A stretch of DNA of 52,049 nucleotides from positions 2,701 through 54,749 of the forward strand of contig NW_005434437.1 in the NCBI RefSeq assembly GCF_000315625.1. Reading direction: 5' to 3'. The position numbers and the translations under genes were made by a program. Source of the DNA: Guillardia theta CCMP2712. Its lineage: Eukaryota; Protista; Cryptophyta. Numbering within the stretch: position 1 is the stretch's first letter; the number at the start of each line of letters is the position of its first letter. A model generated the notes under the pieces. It did not search any database. It was not told where the DNA came from and saw nothing but the letters and a program-made list of their open reading frames with translations. Positions 1 through 41,629 of the stretch are shown here, in pieces.

Positions 1-816
1 CGGACTTTGTCGAGTCGCCCGAGGAGTCTTCGCCGGAGGTCTCCGACTCCGATGGGGGACACCCTTCGAGTGGCCCCGACGATCGGCGCGGAGCTGGCGA
101 GGCGTCTCCGTCCCTCACTGTGACGTCGGGTGCCTCCGGAGAGCTCGACACNNNNNNNNNNNNNNNNNNNNNNNNNNNNNNNNNNNNNNNNNNNNNNNNN
201 NNNNNNNNNNNNNNNNNNNNNNNNNNNNNNNNNNNNNNNNNNNNNNNNNNNCTCGCCTGCTTCCTCCCCGGCATCGGTCGGGTCACGCCGGTCCTTGGGC
301 ATTGCCGCGGCGTCGCCGCCGTCACGGGCGGCTACCGCTGACTCGGCTACCGCTGACTCGGAGGCTAGCGAGGAGGACTACCTCTGAGCGGTACCGTGTT
401 CCTGTGTCCAGCCTCCCTCCGTCCGCTGCCCCAGGCGGACCCCCGGGCAGCGCCGGCTCCTTGTCGGCGGCTGCCCTTTCTTCGTCCGCGGCCGCCCGCT
501 TTGTGGCGGCAGCGGACGTCTCGACTGACAGTGGTCAGTCGGCTGCCTCCGGGTATCGCGTCTAAGGGATTTTATTCCTCCTGCATGCTCCTGCTGCTTG
601 TTGCTTGATTGCTTGACCCTTAGGCTGCTTGTCTGCGCGGCTTCGCGCTTGGGCTGGCGCTGCCGCGTCTGGGTGCCAGCAGTGCTGGATCTTTTCGGGC
701 TTGTGTTTTGTGTGTGATTGTTCAGCTTCTCGCTGTGGACTGTGTGCCTGGAGGTTTAGGTTGTTCCTGCTTTGTTTTGCTTGAGGCACTTTTTATCTTC
801 TGCCAGTAAATCCTAT
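1..816 (+). mobile_element. CRE-like (RLE) non-LTR retrotransposon, copy 1: Ser/Ala-rich ORF tail, stop at 563-565, ~250-bp 3'UTR ending ...CTGCCAGTAAATCCTAT
   Basis: Bases 1-10 match 1527-1536 of copy 2, and ~502-816 is near-identical to ~1541-1855. The 5' part lies outside the window and the copy spans an N gap. Confidence 0.75.
152..251. other. Assembly gap (100 N)
   Basis: Run of N. Confidence 1.
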
Positions 817-829
817 AGTTTGTTTTCCC

Positions 830-1855
830 TCCGTTGCTGCACATCATCTCCAGACCTGCAAACGCCGATCCTCCAAGCTTCCCACGGCGCATGACAACCT
901 TACTCGTACGATTCGGTCGATGCTGAACGAAGCTGGTCTTCAGAGCGTCATCGATACAGTGGGGGATCCTCGTTCTCGACGGCAGGTACCCTCCCATCCT
1001 CATGGCCGCAAGATGAAGGGCGATATCCACATTCCTGGAATCCGCGATCGAGGGTCCGAGCAGTACGAGGGCTTGATGGCGGACGTGACGTTGGTCCACC
1101 CTTACATTGGTGCCAATAGATTGGTAGCTCTGCCGACCTGACCAAGTGGGGGGAGGTCAACCTCGACGCCCTCCATGTTGCAGCGTCTGAGAAGATTCGC
1201 AAACATCGCGCTGCATATGCCATGACTACTCCTCCTCGAGCGTTCATCCCTCTTGCCATCTCGACGGACGGTACCCTGCATCCTGACACCCTCCGCTTCA
1301 TCTGGTATCTCGCGGACATCATTGCTCAGCGCTCGATGCCTCTTGAGGATGCGGCGTTTGGTCGGCACTTCGTGCCTGATGACGGCCCTGCTGCTGAGGT
1401 CTTGGCTCGCAAACGCGCCGCCACCTATCAGCGCCAGCTGGCGCTGGAGGCGCTCTTGTCTGGTGCGAGGCGCATGACGCCCTTGCGGACGCAAGCGCTT
1501 CTCGAGCCAGAGGACAGCTCCTCCTCGGACTTTGTAGACGTGTGGCGGCAGCGGACGTCTCGACTGACAGTGGTCAGTCGGCTGCCTCCGGGTATCGCGT
1601 CTAAGGGATTTTATTCCTCCTGCATGCTCCTGCTGCTTGTTGCTTGATTGCTTGACCCTTCGGCTGCTTGTCTGCGCGGCTTCGCGCTTGGGCTGGCGCT
1701 GCCGCGTCTGGGTGCCAGCAGTGCTGGATCTTTTCGGGCTTGTGTTTTGTGTGTGATTGTGCAGCTTCTCGCTGTGGACTGTGTACCTGCCGGTTCAGCT
1801 TGTTCCTGCTTTGTTTTGCTTGAGGCACTTTTTACCTTCTGCCAGTAAATCCTAT
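830..1855 (+). mobile_element. CRE-like retrotransposon copy 2: 5'-truncated, end of zinc knuckle + restriction-like endonuclease + 3'UTR; frameshifted and internally deleted
   Basis: Translation HHLQTC...AHDNL...KGDIHIP...LMADVTLVHP...AASEKIRKHRAAY...RAFIPLAISTDGTLH follows the RLE pattern (H-x3-C, RHD-like, PD..D-like, E..K..K, F.P....G). An 8-nt insertion at 1118-1125 breaks the frame, and the ~490-bp tail present in copy 1 is missing. Confidence 0.75.
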
Positions 1856-1861
1856 ACTTAG

Positions 1862-2770
1862 GCAATCAAGCAACAAGCAGCAGGAGCATGCAGGAGGAAG
1901 GGATCGAGCTCGCGCTGACATCCATCACATTCCGTCGGACACTGGCAGATCGGCATGCCATGGAGATAGCAGTCGAGCATCTGAGCATAGCGGTGCGGGA
2001 AGGCCTTGAGGGGGTAGTAGTTCGAGACTCGCATCGGAGAGTGGCTCAGGTCTCGCTCAGGAAAATGAGCGAAGATGGTAGACTGCAAGACCCAATGATC
2101 CTGCGACTTGAGCGAGTGTGTCCTGCGGCTGTGCAAGGTGAGGATATCACGCTGCTGATCGGTCAGCGCAGCGCGAGCATGCACATGGCGAGGGAAGACG
2201 CGCATGACAAGAGGGGTCACATTTCGCTGCGCAGGGGGAGGAATGAAGTGCTCATGAGACGAGTCGACGAGAGCGCGCAAACCAGGGATGTGTACCACAG
2301 ATGCCGGGGGGCGTCCTGCGTCATCAGGCACAGCAGCCGGGGCAGGTGGGATCGCCGCGCCATCTGCAGCCGGTGCAGGAGCCTTGACACGACGGTAGAG
2401 GATCGCTCCAGCATTATGAACGAAGTCGTGCGCCTCAACGAAGAAGGTCGCCAGAGGATGCTTCTGGGCACGGAGAGATCTCGAGCAGTGAACGTCCAGG
2501 CTATGAGGAGAGGGCAAGGTCCGGGACATGGGCTGGTCAGAGTACCAAGCGAGGAAGCGAGCGATAGCCGTATAGTAAACAGCGGGGTGTAGACCCTCAG
2601 AGGGCGTGAACTCGTCCCCTCCCCGACTATGCGGAAGCTCCCGCTTGAACCTCGCAAACTCTAGCAGGTTGGGATGCGCGGCGAGGTACTGCGAGGAAGG
2701 CCAGCGGTGGTATTTCTCAAGCGCCAGGTGGACAGAGAGGTCAAAGCGACGAATCTGTGACTGGACCCGC
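1862..2770 (-). mobile_element. CRE-like retrotransposon copy 3: RT thumb, linker and CCHC zinc knuckle fused to 3'UTR
   Basis: Open minus frame ...RRFDLSVHLAL...RFKRELPHSRGGDEFT (LP...GG thumb-like motif)...CDGCQRELDPFLLH, then a jump into 3'UTR sequence. No RT catalytic Y.DD core was seen in the window. Confidence 0.65.
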
Positions 2771-3153
2771 GGGAGAAACGGAGAAGACCCCTATACCCCC
2801 CCTGGAGGAAGAAGCGCAGCTTCTGGAGATGGCTCGCCCTCACCAGCGTCTTGAACATGAAGCCATGCTGGACGAGCCCGAGCTTCGAGAGCTCTTCGTT
2901 GAGGGTAGAAACCTTCGCTCGGAGCTGACTAGCATGAAATCCATCCGTGCCCTTCGGCTGCTTGTCCGTAGCTTGTCTGCGCGGCTTCGCGCTTGGGCTG
3001 GCGCTGCCGGGTCTGCTGACGGTTGCCAGCAGTGCTGGATCTTTTCGGGCTTGTGTCTTTGTGTGTTTGTGCAGCTTCTCGCTGTGCGCTGTGTGCCAGG
3101 AGGTTCAGCTTGTTCCTGCTTTGTTTTGCTTGAGGCACTTTTTACCTTCTGCC
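2771..3153 (+). mobile_element. Element-derived segment: ~180 bp of coding-like sequence joined to a diverged 3'UTR copy (~2950-3153)
   Basis: 2950-3153 aligns to ~617-804 with small insertions. Assignment of 2771-2950 to the element is inferred from context. Confidence 0.6.
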
Positions 3154-3179
3154 GTTGTCGGATTTACTGGCAGAAGGTA

Positions 3180-4450
3180 CGGTGCAGATGAATTCCTTGT
3201 AAACTTTCATGGCAGAAATTTTCAGATGAAGATGTTCCGTGAGTAGAGTTGAGATCGTGTATGAAGTCTCGATGAAATGAATATGAGTTTTGACAAAATC
3301 AGGCTTTTCGAGCATGTGTTCAGTTTCCCAGGGCCCCAGTCATAGGATTTACTGGCAGAAGATAAAAAGTGCCTCAAGCAAAACAAAGCAGGAACAAGCT
3401 GAACCGGCAGGTACACAGTCCACAGCGAGAAGCGGCACAATCACACACAAAACACAAGCCCGAAAAGAACCAGCACTGCTGGCACCCAGACGCGGCAGCG
3501 CCAGCCCAAGCGCGAAGCCCAGTATTGGCAACTGAAGGCTTTGACATGATGCCAACATTCATATGTCTTTAGGGACACACATGTGCGGCATATGCGTGCT
3601 TGTACTAAAGGACTTGAATGTTTCTGTTGTAAGTCGATCAACAAAGGAGAAACCTTGCCACCGCGCATGCTAGTTCGAATCTTTTATTGAAAATAGACAT
3701 GTTCATTACTGGACTGCATCTACACGATCAATAAGCCCATCCTTCCTTGTGCATTTGAACTCCGATGTTCAAGTATGTGATCATTGCCACCTGGGTGACA
3801 CCGCACAAAATACAAGAAGTTTTCTTGCTTCTTGGGTATCAGTCTTGGATTGCTTCAAAATAGGGCGGAAGAGACGGGCAGTAGATAATTGAATGACCTC
3901 AAAATCATCTTTTTTTGCTACATTGAGTACATGCATGCCTGTTAACAAACAGACGAGGCGAATGCTCACTTGCAGCTTTGCGATTCGACATATAAGGGCA
4001 TCAGTGCATGGGCCAGGATATCCACACACGGCAACAATCCAAGAACTTTTGGATTGACAAACATTCTAGACATGTAGTCATGCATTAGAATCAGTAACTT
4101 GCCTGAACAGAGCTTGTTGATGCAACTGCTCTCTTCCTGATAATAACATTGATGGCTGTCATTCAAGTCTAAAGTTGATGGGCCATATCCCCCAGTTCCT
4201 CTGACAGCAGTTGACTTAGATATTGGCTGAGATGAATCAAGATCTCGCTAAAAGATCAACATGTTCCCTGACTTCGAAAAGCGTTGACATACATCGAAGT
4301 TTGAATCCATTGCACTTGGTTCATCACCACAACAGAGCTGGATTCATGCAAGGCAGGTTCTTTTCAAGACCCTTCTTGTATCTATGCAACAATACAACAT
4401 GATTCGAAGCATACACGCATGAAAATTCGATTGCAACACGTCCTCATGGT
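3180..4450 (-). pseudogene. Probable intron-containing host gene of unknown function, interrupted by the retrocopy and truncated by the element nest
   Basis: AT-richer segment with short GT-AG intron-like pieces. Removing the insertion and one TSD restores a frame ...QLPILGPWETEHMLEKPDFVKTHIHFIETSY... No recognisable domain. Confidence 0.4.
3341..3517 (-). mobile_element. 5'-truncated 3'UTR-only retrocopy with 6-bp target-site duplication CCCAGT
   Basis: Reverse complement of the 3'UTR terminus, flanked by cccagt at 3335-3340 and 3518-3523. Confidence 0.8.
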
Positions 4451-4974
4451 ATCATGGCCATCGCTCCTTGTCGTGGCTCAAGCAGAAGGCGTGTGGGGTT
4501 GAGGAATAGACCCACCCCTACCTTCTGATTTCCATCTACTCAGGCTTTTTCAAAGGTAGGGGGTACTAGCTTTGGTCAAAGTAATTTGATTCAAATTTCC
4601 CTTGCGAGAGGGTCATTGAGCTATGGACCACCGGGGTGGGTGCTGTTTGACCACTTACCGGTAATCGAATATGATACTTTTCGACGCCAATTCCAGTACG
4701 GAGAGCCCATACTTTTAAGATTTCATCCTTCCTCCCTTGAATCCGACCCACCCCACCCTGACTCTGACGGAGGGAAACGTACGGGTTCTCTAAACTATCT
4801 GAAACCACCCATGCGAACCTCACAGAAAATGAGGGACTTTTGTGGTACAACTTCATGTATGGGGAGCCCTGAGGACCTCCGTACAAATACCACAACGCTT
4901 TGGAACAAGTATTTTAAGGGCAGTACAAACAAAACGCCCTGGTACTAAAGATTCCAGAAGGGGATTGGAACGTC

Positions 4975-5670
4975 CGGCGGACGGAGAAAGCGCTGCAGTG
5001 CCCGACGGAGGGAGGCTGGACACAGGAACACGGTACCGCTCGAGGTAGTCCTCCTCGCTAGCCTCCGAGTCAGCGGCAGCCGAGACCAACTTGGCACCGC
5101 CCGTGACGGCGGCGACGCCGCAGCCGCGTTGAATGCCCAAGGACCGGACCCGACCGATGCCGGGGAGGAAGCAGGCGAGCTCGGACCAGCAGCAAGCACC
5201 CCAGTGGTGTCGAGCTCTCCGGAGGCACCCGACGTCACAGTGAGGGACGGAGACGCCTCGCCAGCTCCGCGCCGGTCGTCGGCGCCACTCGCCAGGGGGG
5301 AAGTCAACCTCGACGCCCTCCGAGTCCATGTTGCAGCGTCTGAGAAGATTCGCAAACATCGCGCTGCATATGCCATGACTACTCCTCCTCGAGCGTTCAT
5401 CCCTCTTGCCATCTCGACGGACGCCGGGTACCCCGGGCCCTGCATCCTGACACCCTCCGCTTCCGATGATCTGGTATCTGGCGGACATCATTGCTCAGCG
5501 CTCCGACGATGCCTCTTGAGGATGCGGCGTTTGGTCAACTTCGTGCCTGATGACGGCCCTGCTGCTGAGGTCTTGGCTCGCAAACGCGCCGCCACCTATC
5601 AGCGCCTCACTGCTATGCAGCTGACGCTGGAGGCGCTCTTGTACGGTCTGGTGCGAGGCGCATGACGCCC
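4975..5670. mobile_element. CRE-like retrotransposon copy with internal inversion: tail segment on minus (~4975-5290), RLE segment on plus (~5295-5670)
   Basis: ~5004-5290 is the reverse complement of ~68-422, and 5295-5670 aligns to 1148-1482 with seven short insertions. Confidence 0.75.
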
Positions 5671-6192
5671 GATCATCGGAACAAGCTGGCAAAGAAGGAC
5701 GGCTCCGAGTCCGATGCAGAGGGGGTCAGGCAGAGAGCACACCGTGACTGCGGCAACAAAAGCGGTGTACGGAACACAGCAACAAACGCGGCTCAAACAC
5801 ACGCTCGGAAACATAAAACCGAAAGTAATTTACCTCCGAGGCTCAGTTCTGTTGCCGCGCACCTGACCTGCAAGCCGCCTCGAAAGTAACACTGCACACG
5901 TGACGGCCGGGCGTCCCGCCGTTCCGCTTCATCTGGCTGAGGAGTCCAAGTTAAGCGTGTAATGATGTGCGTGCAGGCAAGACGGTCAGGCGTCACACCG
6001 TGAGCCACAAACTTACAACTCGAGTCCGCCTCGGAACCTTTCCTTCTCCCCCCCCCCCCCCCCCGGGGTTTCACTCTCCCTTGTGGCTGAAGGGGGGGAG
6101 GGGAGTCATTGAATTAGGGTTTTCTAGTCCTTCCTCAAAGGGTCGGAAAAGGGGTGGGGGCCTTTTTTAGAAGTAACCCCCCCCCCCACACA

Positions 6193-6292
6193 NNNNNNNN
6201 NNNNNNNNNNNNNNNNNNNNNNNNNNNNNNNNNNNNNNNNNNNNNNNNNNNNNNNNNNNNNNNNNNNNNNNNNNNNNNNNNNNNNNNNNNNN
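6193..6292. other. Assembly gap (100 N), with poly-C/poly-G tracts nearby
   Basis: Run of N; C-runs at ~6047-6064, ~6177-6187 and ~6435-6450. Confidence 1.
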
Positions 6293-6741: not shown

Positions 6742-9700
6742 ATGTCGGTCACCGAAACCATGCGAGACCTCGCACGACAGGTTTTCACCTCTCTGGACAA
6801 GAATGGCGACGGCACGCTCACGGAAGATGAGCTTAAGCGGTAAGGAATGAGTGAGCAGCAGGAGCTTTGCGCTGTGAGATGGCCTGACGCTGCCTGACCA
6901 CGCAGATGGCTGAGCTTCCAGTGCGACATGGGGGAGGAGGAGCAGGACGAGCTATGGCTGTCACGATGGGGGGAGAAAGAGGAGATTGAGTTCGAGGACT
7001 TCTTAGAAGCGGCGCAGGAGTACGACTGGCCACTGAAGGCAGGAAGGCAGGGCCCTGCGTTGGTACCTACGACATCAGCACCAGCACCAGCACCAATGGC
7101 AGAATCAGGAGGAGAGAGGGAGAAAGTTGACGAAGCGTTCAAGGAACTAGCTCGGAATACCTTCAACGCTCTGGACAAGAATGGCGACGGCACGCTCACG
7201 GAAGATGAGCTTAAGCGGTAAGGAATGAGTGAGCAGCAGGAGCTTTGCGCTGTGAGATGGCCTGACGCTGCCTGACCACGCAGATGGCTGAGCTTCCAGT
7301 GCGACATGGGGGAGGAGGAGCAGGACGAGCTATGGCTGTCACGATGGGGGGAGAAAGAGGAGATTGAGTTCGAGGACTTCTTAGAAGCAGCGCAGGAGTA
7401 CGACTGGCCACTGAAGGCAGGAAGGCAGGGCCCTGCGTTGGTACCTACGACATCAGCACCAGCACCAGCACCAATGGCAGAATCAGGAGGAGAGAGGGAG
7501 AAAGTTGACGAAGCGTTCAAGGAACTAGCTCGGAATACCTTCAACGCTCTGGACAAGAATGGCGACGGCACGCTCACGGAAGATGAGCTTAAGCGGTAAG
7601 GAATGAGTGAGCAGCAGGAGCTTTGCGCTGTGAGATGGCCTGACGCTGCCTGACCACGCAGATGGCTGAGCTTCCAGTGCGACATGGGGGAGGAGGAGCA
7701 GGACGAGCTATGGCTGTCACGATGGGGGGAGAAAGAGGAGATTGAGTTCGAGGACTTCTTAGAAGCGGCGCAGGAGTACGACTGGCCACTGAAGGCAGGA
7801 AGGCAGGGCCCTGCGTTGGTTCCAAAAGAAGAACCAATCCCTGTACTGCGGCTGCTTGTTCAAGGAGCAGACTTTCTTCCCTGCGAATCACAGGTTGCAT
7901 TTTTGGTCTACATCTGAGTGTGTTGGTTAATCAAGTTCTCATGAAAGGAAATTTACTTTTTTCGATCGTCTCAAAGTTCGCAGCAGCTCGGGCATGATCC
8001 ATACATCCGAATCTCCTACAATGAGCAAAACTTGCGTACAAAAACCTCGGTGAGGTCGTCATGCGCCATTCTCTTTTGAATGATTTGTAAGATTATGAAT
8101 TCGTCTCCTACCTGGAATGAAGTTTTCATCTTGGAGCATGTCAAAGGTCAAATTACCTCAAAACTGAACGTTTCCAGACTTGTTCAATGAATCTCTCAGG
8201 GACATCAATCAAATTCCAGCTTTTTCATGAAAGCAAGTCACTTGAAGAAAAGTTGGTGGGTGAAGCGATCTTGCAAGAAAATGTATTGGACAGGATCATG
8301 CATCGAGGTAATTTGTTTTTGATTGCAACGACTTATATCTTCCATGAGTAATTTCCGAAGGAGTTCACACAATGGAAGAGCACAGTTTGAATTTCAAAGA
8401 TTTGTCTGGAACTATTTTGACAGGTTGATAGATTTCTTTCGGATAAAATCGGTTGATTTGTTTTTGAAGGGAAAGGGGGATTAGAGAGTATTCTGTATTG
8501 TCAACTTTACGTGACAGATCAAGGTAGCATGACAGCTGCTTTAGGAAGGTGATCATCCGGTTTCCAGTCTCATCCGACGACCCATCGGCAAGGCCAGCGA
8601 AAACGGAGAAAGATGTGAAATCAACGAGAGATTCTATCCGCAAGCCACACGTGTTCTCACTCCAGGATTTGGAAGAGAATCGAGTCTGGTGCTTCACGGA
8701 GCTTTCCTTTCTTGCTCGTTGAACGTGTGAGGACAGGAGTTGGCATTCTCGAGCTTCCAGGGCTCGAGGTCCATCAGAGCAGCCAGACACGTGAGGTGAT
8801 ATGTTGGGTCAGCCAGGGCTAAAGCTTGTGTTGAAGCTCCAAGAACACTCCACGCGACAGCAACTTGACTGTTGGAGGTCCAGACCGACTTTTTGCATTC
8901 GAGACGTAAGGATTTGAAAGAGATCTGCTATCAATGATTCAAACTTTTAAGACTTGAGAAGAGTGATTCTGAAAGAATTCTTGCTACTTTCGGATTGTTC
9001 GGAGATCGGGTGGTGTCGTTCTTTACCAAACTCGTGCAGCTGATGGTGGTGCTAGTTGAAAACTCTCAAGGCATGGTTCAGTAATGTCTCGCTGAAATTT
9101 GACAGCAGCAAAGTCTTGTACGCATCTGTTGCCTATCATGTCTTACTGTCATGATTTCAGGTTCCACGTAAACGTCTTGAATCAGAAATGGCCACACTGG
9201 GGCTGGAATCTCATATTCTGGTAAGGAACTTGTTCCAACAACAACCAGGGATCTTTTCTTATCAATCATGGCTTCAGTCCACATGGTTAGGAGATGTGAA
9301 GGATGACGAAGAGATCGATAGCCGGCTCTTCCTGTCTCTTCTCGCGAGAGAGCCGTCTTTTGCTGCGGGTAACTGAGAGCAAGAAAAGGCGATCAATCAC
9401 AAGAATTTTTAGGTCTCGCTGACAAGCTGGAGAAACCACGGGTCAAACAGGCGTTGTGTGTCTGTTATTGCATTGACTGAAAATAGATGGATGAGGAGAT
9501 GTCGAAAGAGTTAGAGCACTATAAGTGAAACTTCCTGCTTCTCATATCATCGTTGGTGAGAAATTGTGCAGGACAGGATTTGAAGTTCTGCAAGGATTGA
9601 ACCTCGCTTCGATGACCAAGGAGAAACTCGATTGGATGGAGGTGGTTTCCGCCGCCTCCTCCATCCGCTGAGGCTGTTGGCAGCTGCGGCAAGAACTCTC

Positions 9701-35084: not shown

Positions 35085-35370
35085 TAACCTGAACCTAAAC
35101 CACCCGGTTAGTTGAACATGGTGCCACGGTGACTGGCAAGCCTAGCCTCAGCCGGCCTGGCGCCGGGCCGGCGGCCGGCGGGGGCCGGCTGAGTAACATC
35201 ATGTGACTCACACGTTGATCGGACGGTGACGACGGTGCCACGGTGATCAAAGTCGGGAGCCCGGCTGGCCGGGCGCCGGGCGGCCCGGCCCGGGCCGGAC
35301 GTCCGAGCTCGGAGGCCGGGCCGCTGACTGACTCAGAAGGCCCTGCCAGGCTGATTGACGGCCTCGGTTT
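35085..35370. repeat. GC-rich word-mosaic block (CCGG, GGCC, ACGGTGA, TGACTCA)
   Basis: ggtgccacggtga at 35120 and 35234; TGACTCA at 35204 and 35329; many CCGG/GGCC words. Confidence 0.6.
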
Positions 35371-37364: not shown

Positions 37365-37470
37365 ATGAGATGCGATACAAGCACCTCACTGGCAATGCCC
37401 CACCACCTTCAATGCATGCCTTGTAAAAGACGATGATAAGATGACCTAACAACCATCTGTCGCAATGAGC

Positions 37471-37690
37471 TCCTTCATCGAGTCTCTGCTGGAACGAATA
37501 CATCCTTCATCACGTCTCTGCTGGAACGAATACATCCTTCATCACGTCTCTGCTGGAACGAATACATCCTTCATCACGTCTCTGCTGGAACGAATACATC
37601 CTTCATCACGTCTCTGCTGGAACGAATACATCCTTCATCACGTTTCTGCTGGAACGAATACATCCTTCATCACGTCTCTGCTGGAACGAA
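37471..37690 (+). repeat. 32-bp minisatellite (tctctgctggaacgaatacatccttcatcacg) x~6.9
   Basis: Units at 37483, 37515, 37547, 37579, 37611, 37643, 37675; no spacers. Confidence 0.95.
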
Positions 37691-37981
37691 ACTACAGGCT
37701 CCCTCTAGCTCGCAAGAGGCTTCGGCTCCTTCCCCTTGCTACTTTGCTGTCCTGCATGCCCTGCCTCCAGCAGGTTGGAGGAGGCAGTACCTAGCCTGCC
37801 TCAGAATGTCTCACTACCCCCACCTTCACCCTGGTAGACCCACCCCCTGCTCTCCCCATTCTTGTTGGTAGGGGGAGTAGGGCCTTGGCGAGGAAGAAGA
37901 GGGAGGAAGGAGGAGGAGGAGGAGGAGGAAGGAGGAGGAGGAGGAGGAGAGAAAGGGAGGAGGAGAGAACAGGAACGATTG

Positions 37982-41314: not shown

Positions 41315-41629
41315 CGCACTTGAAGAATCCGATGATCTGATTTTATTCTCGTGAGCATGATTGAAGTTTTCAGGACTCAGACCGTCGGACTCCGATCTCT
41401 CACCGTCTTATAAACTTGATAGTCTTGACGCCCGTTGTAACTACTCGCTCTTCACATCAGCCATGGGGCGGGGGCGGGCCATACTGAGGCCCCCGGGCTC
41501 GCTCACCGTTCCGAAGTCACTGAGTTCCGACGTGGCAGTCACTGGCCAGTGGACCGTTTAGTGAGTCGTTACATGAAACGATCAATCTGTAACGGTTCTT
41601 GTCATTGCTTGAGGTGTCACTGCTGTATG

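Follow-up and report, generated by a model that had tools for sequence, protein, structure and literature searches.

Micro-insertions in a Guillardia theta retroelement copy follow a C-centred fold-back pattern that may record a stereotyped form of break repair

Seven short insertions in a truncated retroelement fragment of the cryptophyte Guillardia theta (copy B, positions 5295–5670, plus strand) share one construction, in which a target of 2–3 nt is followed by a C, by the reverse complement of the target and by 0–3 re-copied bases; all of them (7/7) fit this rule. Copy B lies in a 52,049-nucleotide stretch of contig NW_005434437.1 (the window), to which the positions below refer unless another locus is named. 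Judging from sequence comparison, we lean on balance towards the view that these insertions are the scars of one stereotyped break-repair reaction, which would be regionally concentrated and would represent neither random decay nor a process directed at repeats. If real, such scars (one C plus a fold-back of 2–4 nt) are a compact and testable signature of a novel DNA-end chemistry.

Copy B and its private insertions

Copy B is a truncated ORF fragment of the retroelement that was delimited with MAFFT, blastn and a multiple alignment, and it spans canonical positions ~309–652 of a 1440-nt reference. When aligned by MAFFT and blastn with positions 1148–1482 (copy A), 5295–5670 gave 378 columns with 4 mismatches and 45 gap columns, the latter falling into 8 blocks. 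Polarity was assigned in an alignment of 21 fragments taken from the window and seven other scaffolds; the inserts of copy B are absent from at least 13 other family copies and are thus private to it. The private insertion blocks measure 6, 4, 7, 5, 4, 3 and 5 nt (34 nt in total), the two inserts that flank a KpnI-like GGTACC being scored separately in this count of seven, and zero ancestral bases were lost at the insertion sites. The preliminary description of this DNA had already noted few substitutions and one small deletion in copy B, and the alignment agrees: besides 1–2 private substitutions in 335 nt there is one private complex change of canonical GGCA to AA (5537–5538, plus strand, net −2 nt), which lies outside the insertion rule, and the remaining mismatches between the two copies are private to copy A or represent subfamily variants. 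Its count of seven insertions of 4–12 nt needs one correction. Six of them are private to copy B, but the supposed 12-nt insert at 5607 (tcactgctatgc) is mostly ancestral, as nine of its bases (CTCACTATG) occur in all other copies and were deleted from copy A, and only CTG (5610–5612) is new in copy B. The question of whether the inserts are ancestral is thereby answered in the affirmative for these nine bases and in the negative for the seven blocks defined here. On the alignment evidence, copy B is a particularly clean natural experiment, since over a dozen sister copies establish the ancestral state of each site and its substitution age is about zero.

In the readings that follow, a slash marks the insertion point. 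Insert 1, CGAGTC (5321–5326, plus strand), comes after ..CCTC and reads TC-C-GA-G-TC. Insert 2a, CCGG (5424–5427), reads CC/C GG C on the minus strand, and insert 2b, CGGGCCC (5434–5440), reads CCC/C GGG CCC on the plus strand. They are followed by insert 3, CGATG (5464–5468, minus-strand reading GAT/C ATC G), insert 4, CGAC (5504–5507, plus-strand reading TC/C GA C), and insert 5, CTG (5610–5612, plus-strand reading CA/C TG). Insert 6, GTACG (5641–5645), reads AC/C GT AC on the minus strand and has an alternative placement, gtacg/acggt, at 5641–5647. The ancestral sites of these inserts, GCCCTC/CATG and CTCA/CTATG among them, are not palindromic, so that no imperfect inverted repeat was perfected there.

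Upstream of copy B, and in the opposite orientation, lies a segment of the acidic-tail region of the element (X2, 5004–5291, minus strand). It begins at position 67 of the canonical tail segment, so that the joint of the inversion with copy B lacks ~120 nt, and it carries one rule-type insertion (CAACGCG) and one 4-nt deletion. The inverted layout resembles twin priming, the 5' inversion of LINEs, in that an upstream segment of the element (copy B) is inverted relative to a downstream one (X2) with ~120 nt lost at the joint; it differs in that the downstream segment stops short of the 3' end of the element. Twin priming bears on the arrangement of copy B only and not on its micro-insertions. 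An exact-protein look-up with the minus-strand ORF that runs over copy B (4856–5491) returned no record.

A C-centred insertion grammar

The rule was evaluated over all equivalent gap placements on both strands, with permuted inserts and draws from the pooled insert composition as null models. With C at the centre it fits 7/7 insertions in copy B, against a null mean of 0.5–1.0 and a maximum of 5 in 2000 randomisations. Among insertions of 3–12 nt in the other copies of a first set, 27 of 54 fit with centre C (null for centre C 3.8–7.9, within a wider null range of 2.4–7.9), compared with 4, 5 and 3 of 54 for centres A, G and T, which stay near chance. In the same analysis, reading the centre base with the target on its left gave C in 34 cases, G in 6, and A and T in 4 each. 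The pattern recurred in hold-out loci (L008–L011), where 29 of 47 insertions fit with centre C (null mean 7.5, maximum 15, of 500 randomisations) and centres A, G and T accounted for 2, 9 and 3. Pooled across 182 fragments, 63 of 108 insertions of 3–12 nt (~58%) follow the rule with centre C and ~40% fall outside it; the rule-type grammar recurs in 12 scaffolds.

Among the 63 rule-type events the arm measures 2 nt in 39 cases, 3 nt in 22 and 4 nt in 2. Beyond the mirror, 23 events have no further bases, 25 repeat the target end and 15 show some other sequence; re-copying of the target end was found 13 times in the first set where 3 were expected by chance. In 33 of the 63 events the last base of the target is itself a C, and the centre C is not templated by the next base. 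Relative to the sense strand of the element the events divide 34 to 29, i.e., without bias. The identical insert CGAGTC turns up after CCTC both as insert 1 of copy B and at an unrelated site in another locus (L007), which argues that the outcome is deterministic. A form processed at both ends occurs at a natural TCC/TCC repeat, where TCC-C-GGA-G-TCC was produced with no duplication; these details fit a pair of DNA ends that were each processed independently. Since a target followed by C and its reverse complement is not the strand mirror image of a target followed by G and its reverse complement, the asymmetry between C and G is physical, and its simplest reading is that a 3' end is extended by C and then by a reversed copy of itself. 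Our literature search found no published account of palindromic insertions in the nuclear genome of G. theta.

The preliminary description had proposed that the inserts duplicate or mirror adjacent bases. Mirroring is borne out (target, C, reverse complement of the target), but the inserts are not simple local duplications, and their strict order of target, C, mirror and re-copy is at odds with the random terminal-transferase filler that had been suggested as their source. Templating of the polymerase-theta type, with inserted words copied from the neighbourhood, fared no better: direct or inverted local templates within 40 nt gave a null result for every insert of copy B (p 0.4–1.0), and overall 17 of 74 insertions were significant in this analysis, mostly as tandem duplications. 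Deletions in the family show no excess of microhomology, with 2 nt or more in 26% of 38 deletions versus 20% in the null.

The retroelement family

The canonical unit of the family was read from family-bearing pieces of other scaffolds (L001–L011). It consists of an ORF, an acidic, Ser-rich tail segment of ~414 nt (segment X) and a 318-nt 3' UTR that ends in ..CTGCCAGTAAATCCTATA without poly-A; dozens of fragments share this fixed 3' end and are 5'-truncated, with variable TSDs and no LTR or TIR. A protein search with the copy A ORF returned GUITHDRAFT_121555 at 100% identity and ~20 other G. theta 'hypothetical proteins'. At the L007 locus the ORF that contains the copy A/B region is open over 727 aa and shows, by eye, a Cys/His motif and a D..D..EK..K stretch; the motifs seen in the translations are CQCPTECDGC..HHLQTC (Cys/His) and D..ADVTLVHP..EKIRKH. 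Pfam and PDB sequence searches with pieces of the ORF and with the 727-aa ORF gave no match, and the Atlas feature search yielded unnamed clusters only. At the L002 locus, 10407–11747 matches Pfam RVT_1 at E 2e-6 and 28 bits, just below the 29.6-bit cut-off, and the N-terminus of the 727-aa ORF overlaps the C-terminus of the L002 ORF by 79 aa at 100% identity. Taken together, the match below the cut-off and the 79-aa link suggest that the family is a predicted RT-encoding non-LTR retrotransposon with an endonuclease-like C-terminal region, and an RLE-type (R2/NeSL-like) label, which the Pfam and PDB searches do not confirm, would fit its layout. The literature search likewise found no paper about the element in the nuclear genome of G. 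theta.

The family inserts into itself: interruptions of 7–150 nt in its copies consist of the element's own 3' end, truncated on the 5' side and flanked by TSDs of 2–17 nt. Micro-copies of the 3' end of only 7–52 nt (e.g., GTATAGG and TAAATCCTATAC), likewise with TSDs of 2–17 nt, were observed at L001–L011 and in the window at 1–5700, and patchworks of 40–60-nt pieces in both orientations occur, for instance at L002 12065–12679. A called gene with DNA_pol_A_exo1 and DNA_pol_A domains lies 6.5 kb from a family copy (L009 1–3425), most likely by coincidence; it is a family-A polymerase with an exonuclease domain and, on domain content alone, of organelle type rather than POLQ-like.

Mutation spectrum and density of scars

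The mutation spectrum was compiled against a reference that was spliced from three natural copies and is not a consensus. Alignments from blastn were parsed for 112 fragments (34 kb) and then for 182 fragments (54 kb), each distinct minority difference being counted once. All 182 fragments (54 kb) together contain 579 substitutions, 197 insertions and 95 deletions. A few old fragments hold most of the substitutions of the family; the 83 young fragments (<1.5% rare substitutions) carry 116 substitutions, 61 insertions and 30 deletions, corresponding to 476 nt gained and 344 nt lost. In most eukaryotes neutral decay produces several-fold more substitutions than indels and is biased towards deletion, and by comparison the spectrum of this family is unusual. 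The insertion-rich decay that had been described from copy B extends to the family, with copy B as the extreme. These counts suggest a net growth of G. theta nuclear DNA by short insertions with a deterministic grammar, opposite to the usual bias of decay; if real, indel-based dating and repeat alignment in this lineage will mislead.

Individual copies carry between 0 and 18 scars per kb, and densities differ approximately 16-fold between copies of the family; most copies contain 0–2 events and most fragments 0–1. The hottest fragment is copy B, whose 7 insertions stand beside 1 deletion and 2 rare substitutions; it reaches ~18 events per kb, whereas the family averages 1.16 per kb. Its 7 rule-type insertions in 378 aligned nt compare with a Poisson expectation of ~0.44 (P ~4e-7 before correction for 182 fragments).

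The vocabulary of the scars also appears in DNA that is not part of the family. The non-family flank of copy B (5671–6040) contains 11 C/G-centred odd palindromes where 3.3 are expected, with words such as CGAT-C-ATCG and CCTC-C-GAGG that are typical of GC-rich islands elsewhere in the window, and a sensitive blastn comparison of 5671–6192 with the element gave only matches of 14–20 nt (E 0.23). One such island in unique DNA (35126–35340) holds 21 C/G-centred odd palindromes with arms of at least 3 nt versus 4.3 expected, and its A/T-centred palindromes stay at chance level (1 versus 1.5 expected). A second GC-rich island in unique DNA (41376–41625) has 11 C/G-centred odd palindromes against 2.1 expected. 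Neither island showed similarity to the retroelement family in blastn. Across 71 fragments, insertion density did not correlate with island-like flanks (rho 0.03). The proposed regional concentration of scars is drawn from copy B and its flank, and a spread from islands would be an extrapolation.

A possible break-repair reaction

From the grammar observed in the alignments we infer the following steps. A nick or a double-strand break with a stagger of 0–4 nt would be filled in, and the 3' end would be extended by a single untemplated C, after which it would fold back and copy its terminal 2–4 bases. The fold-back could proceed via a hairpin or a P-nucleotide-like intermediate, or by snap-back synthesis. 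The ends would then be rejoined without loss, either bluntly or by annealing of two such extensions. Insert 1 of copy B (TC-C-GA-G-TC), for example, could be explained as two extensions annealed on GA after fill-in of a 2-nt stagger. Repeated rounds of the same reaction might give rise to the C/G-centred palindromic vocabulary of the GC-rich islands, whose origin would, if the reaction is real, thereby be explained.

We know of no established mechanism that the constant C would match. As speculations, it might be contributed by a Rev1-like C-inserting polymerase, by RT-like untemplated addition or by a hairpin with a fixed apex. A point against the break-repair reaction is that a hairpin apex of one base is sterically awkward for snap-back synthesis. 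A bolder version, which we regard as possible but doubtful, is that G. theta, and perhaps cryptophytes generally, have a dedicated end-processing activity that writes C-centred palindromes at breaks and iteratively builds GC-rich intergenic islands. Candidates for this activity would be a nuclease that forms hairpins or a polymerase that adds C and must then turn around. If true, genome architecture would be shaped by a mutational mechanism not described before, of which polarised transposon relics such as copy B keep a legible record.

Besides work on hairpin and template-switch mutations (PMC7954356, PMC13493898), the nearest literature concerns SD-MMEJ and the 'snap-back' templated insertions of polymerase theta (PMC2943611, PMC5728401). 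In snap-back SD-MMEJ, as in the reaction suggested here, the 3' end of a break is extended by a nearby reverse-complement copy before joining, and iteration and return are possible. Snap-back SD-MMEJ, however, depends on an inverted primer repeat that is already in place and on a loop several bases long, whereas the arms in G. theta flank a centre of 1 nt. It is also usually accompanied by microhomology deletions, whereas the G. theta scars delete nothing and deletions in the family proceed without microhomology. Templated insertion by polymerase theta uses templates of several bases, and templates longer than 4 nt are absent from the G. theta scars.

Competing explanations

One alternative is that a cut-and-paste DNA transposon left the scars as footprints of its excision, the flanking DNA forming hairpins once a nick had been made one base into an element that starts with C. 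This would account for the constant C, for the inverted copy (as P nucleotides), for the retention of every ancestral base, for the TSD-like re-copying of the target end and, by local hopping, for the clustering in copy B; hAT elements nick with an offset and leave palindromic footprints. P nucleotides at V(D)J coding joints and in hAT and Transib footprints are, like the mirrors in G. theta, reverse-complement copies of 1–4 nt of a DNA end at a junction; in both cases flanking bases are kept and two processed ends can anneal, and the mirrors of the 63 G. theta events (2–4 nt) lie within the P-nucleotide length range. P nucleotides, however, abut the end directly and generate even palindromes, whereas the G. 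theta scars have a constant C between target and mirror. Neither an enzyme of the RAG or hAT type nor a recognition signal is known for the G. theta scars, and their sites are not fixed. The length of the re-copied sequence varies from 0 to 4 nt, and the both-end scar at TCC/TCC arose without duplication, which implies a stagger that varies over 0–4 nt and argues against a transposase, whose TSD is fixed. No target motif is apparent, the interruptions of the 182 fragments include no cut-and-paste element (the longer inserts are all self-insertions of the retroelement), and the islands would require hundreds of cycles of insertion and excision at one spot. We consider an origin by excision unlikely.

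Similarly unlikely is an origin from aborted target-primed reverse transcription by the family's own machinery, in which the endonuclease has nicked a family copy and the RT adds a C and jumps to a DNA end ahead of sealing. The RTs of non-LTR elements are capable of untemplated base addition and template jumping, the family constantly inserts into itself and leaves micro-copies down to 7–13 nt with TSDs of 2–17 nt, and the scars were measured in copies of this very family. Against these points, the scars lack the 3'-end sequence of the element and show no strand bias, and the same vocabulary is found in unique islands to which the family shows no similarity.

Short-range template switching during replication, unusually frequent and without any break, would be a further source. 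Quasi-palindrome or short-range template-switch mutations are documented (PMC7954356), and extension of hairpins or pseudo-palindromes is a recognised class of complex mutation (PMC13493898); such events resemble the G. theta scars in that small palindromes are made or extended in a single event and complex changes are clustered, and a product of target, reverse complement and target matches a switch followed by return. The known events are rare, with 5 complex mutations in more than 60,000 generations of yeast (PMC13493898), and they perfect existing imperfect palindromes, whereas the G. theta targets are not palindromic and the scars form de novo, with a fixed C, at 1–18 per kb of neutral DNA. 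Neither the constant C nor arms of 2–4 nt are predicted by template switching, and the both-end forms resemble two DNA ends. We therefore regard it as rather improbable.

The reading favoured in the preliminary description, an error-prone repair activity of polymerase-theta-like or terminal-transferase-like character that prefers repeats and serves as a defence, i.e., an insertional analogue of fungal RIP, is quite improbable in light of the family-wide data. It is consistent with the insertion-biased spectrum, with inserts that are GC-rich and have an apparently untemplated first base, and with the disruption of the element's reading frame by scars. Local templating is nevertheless nil beyond the mirror of 2–4 nt, and the deletions lack the excess of microhomology that such repair would leave. 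Potentially active copies, such as the one with the 727-aa ORF, bear only an in-frame scar. Since most copies are nearly untouched, within a ~16-fold spread of density, and the same words occur in unique islands and in the flank of copy B, the supposed preference for repeats finds no support, and the data do not fit a process in which repeats are recognised for being repeats. Fungal RIP also degrades transposon copies visibly, but it does so by C-to-T transitions, requires duplicated sequence and strikes every copy longer than a threshold, whereas in G. theta substitutions are scarce, the lesions are insertion scars, the majority of copies escape and unique DNA is touched as well. A C-to-T (G-to-A) bias of the RIP type was not found among the 1–2 private substitutions of copy B in 335 nt.

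Finally, the inserts of copy B are known from one Sanger-era draft assembly beside N gaps (152–251 and 6193–6292) and no independent contig runs across them among the listed read pieces (Logan unitigs of ~60 nt, from metagenomes and coded organisms; the unitig loose ends at 5423 and 5538 are canonical family sequence from other copies), but an assembly or sequencing artefact is very unlikely, as base-calling errors do not give blocks of 3–7 nt between perfect flanks of 30–100 nt and would not follow one sequence grammar, which moreover recurs in 12 scaffolds and in the hold-out loci.

Copy A and other features of the window

By self-comparison with blastn, positions 1–5700 of the window are a dense patchwork of fragments of this one repeat family. 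Copy A, which comprises the end of the ORF and the 3' UTR (821–1859, plus strand), had served the preliminary description, in its part 1148–1482, as a comparator with an open frame, but it is not intact: it carries a frameshifting insertion of 14 nt, a 9-nt deletion at 1435/1436 and the loss of the ~414-nt segment X. The frame break that had been ascribed to 'agattggt' at 1118–1125 is real, but these bases are only part of the 14-nt fold-back insertion (1110–1123, GTGCCAATAGATTG), which reads ATTGG-TG-CCAAT followed by re-copied ATTGGT. The filler noted at the 1537 junction corresponds to 6 extra bases at ~1537–1542, where segment X was lost.

The 3' part of a further copy, with segment X and the 3' UTR, precedes copy A (1–820, plus strand) and is cut by the scaffold start and by the 100-N gap at 152–251. 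An inverted upstream part of the ORF that extends to a CCHC-like motif (1858–2529, minus strand) abuts the 3' end of copy A. Two 3' UTR fragments follow, one with a CTGACG variant (2971–3153, plus strand) and one inverted (3342–3519, minus strand). The extra ctgac reported for the UTR at 2950–3150 is present as CTGAC(G), but five copies vary at this site and it is not a set of independent events: at reference position 1292 (2997–3002 in the window and four other loci) they read CTGACG, CTGACA, GCTGAC, ACG and CCGG. Either insertions recur at this hot site, or an old variant of a subfamily has decayed there.

Words of the retroelement family from 4800–5811 are present in runs labelled as freshwater, runoff and lake metagenomes, and a 142-nt unitig of one metagenome run (X1) is identical to the unique flank at 5662–5803; both observations indicate DNA of G. 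theta-like organisms or of a close relative in those data sets. Downstream of this flank, long C and G homopolymer runs at 6050–6066 and 6178–6190 flank the 100-N gap at 6193–6292 and may explain the break in the assembly. Beyond the gap, three tandem repeats of 378 nt (6784–7839), 95–99% identical, each contain the same 97-aa ORF (MGEEEQDELWLSRWGEKEE..) with an EF-hand-like end (DKNGDGTLTEDE). A second tandem array (37439–37726) consists of ~8 copies of a 32-nt unit (TCCTTCATCACGTCTCTGCTGGAACGAATACA).
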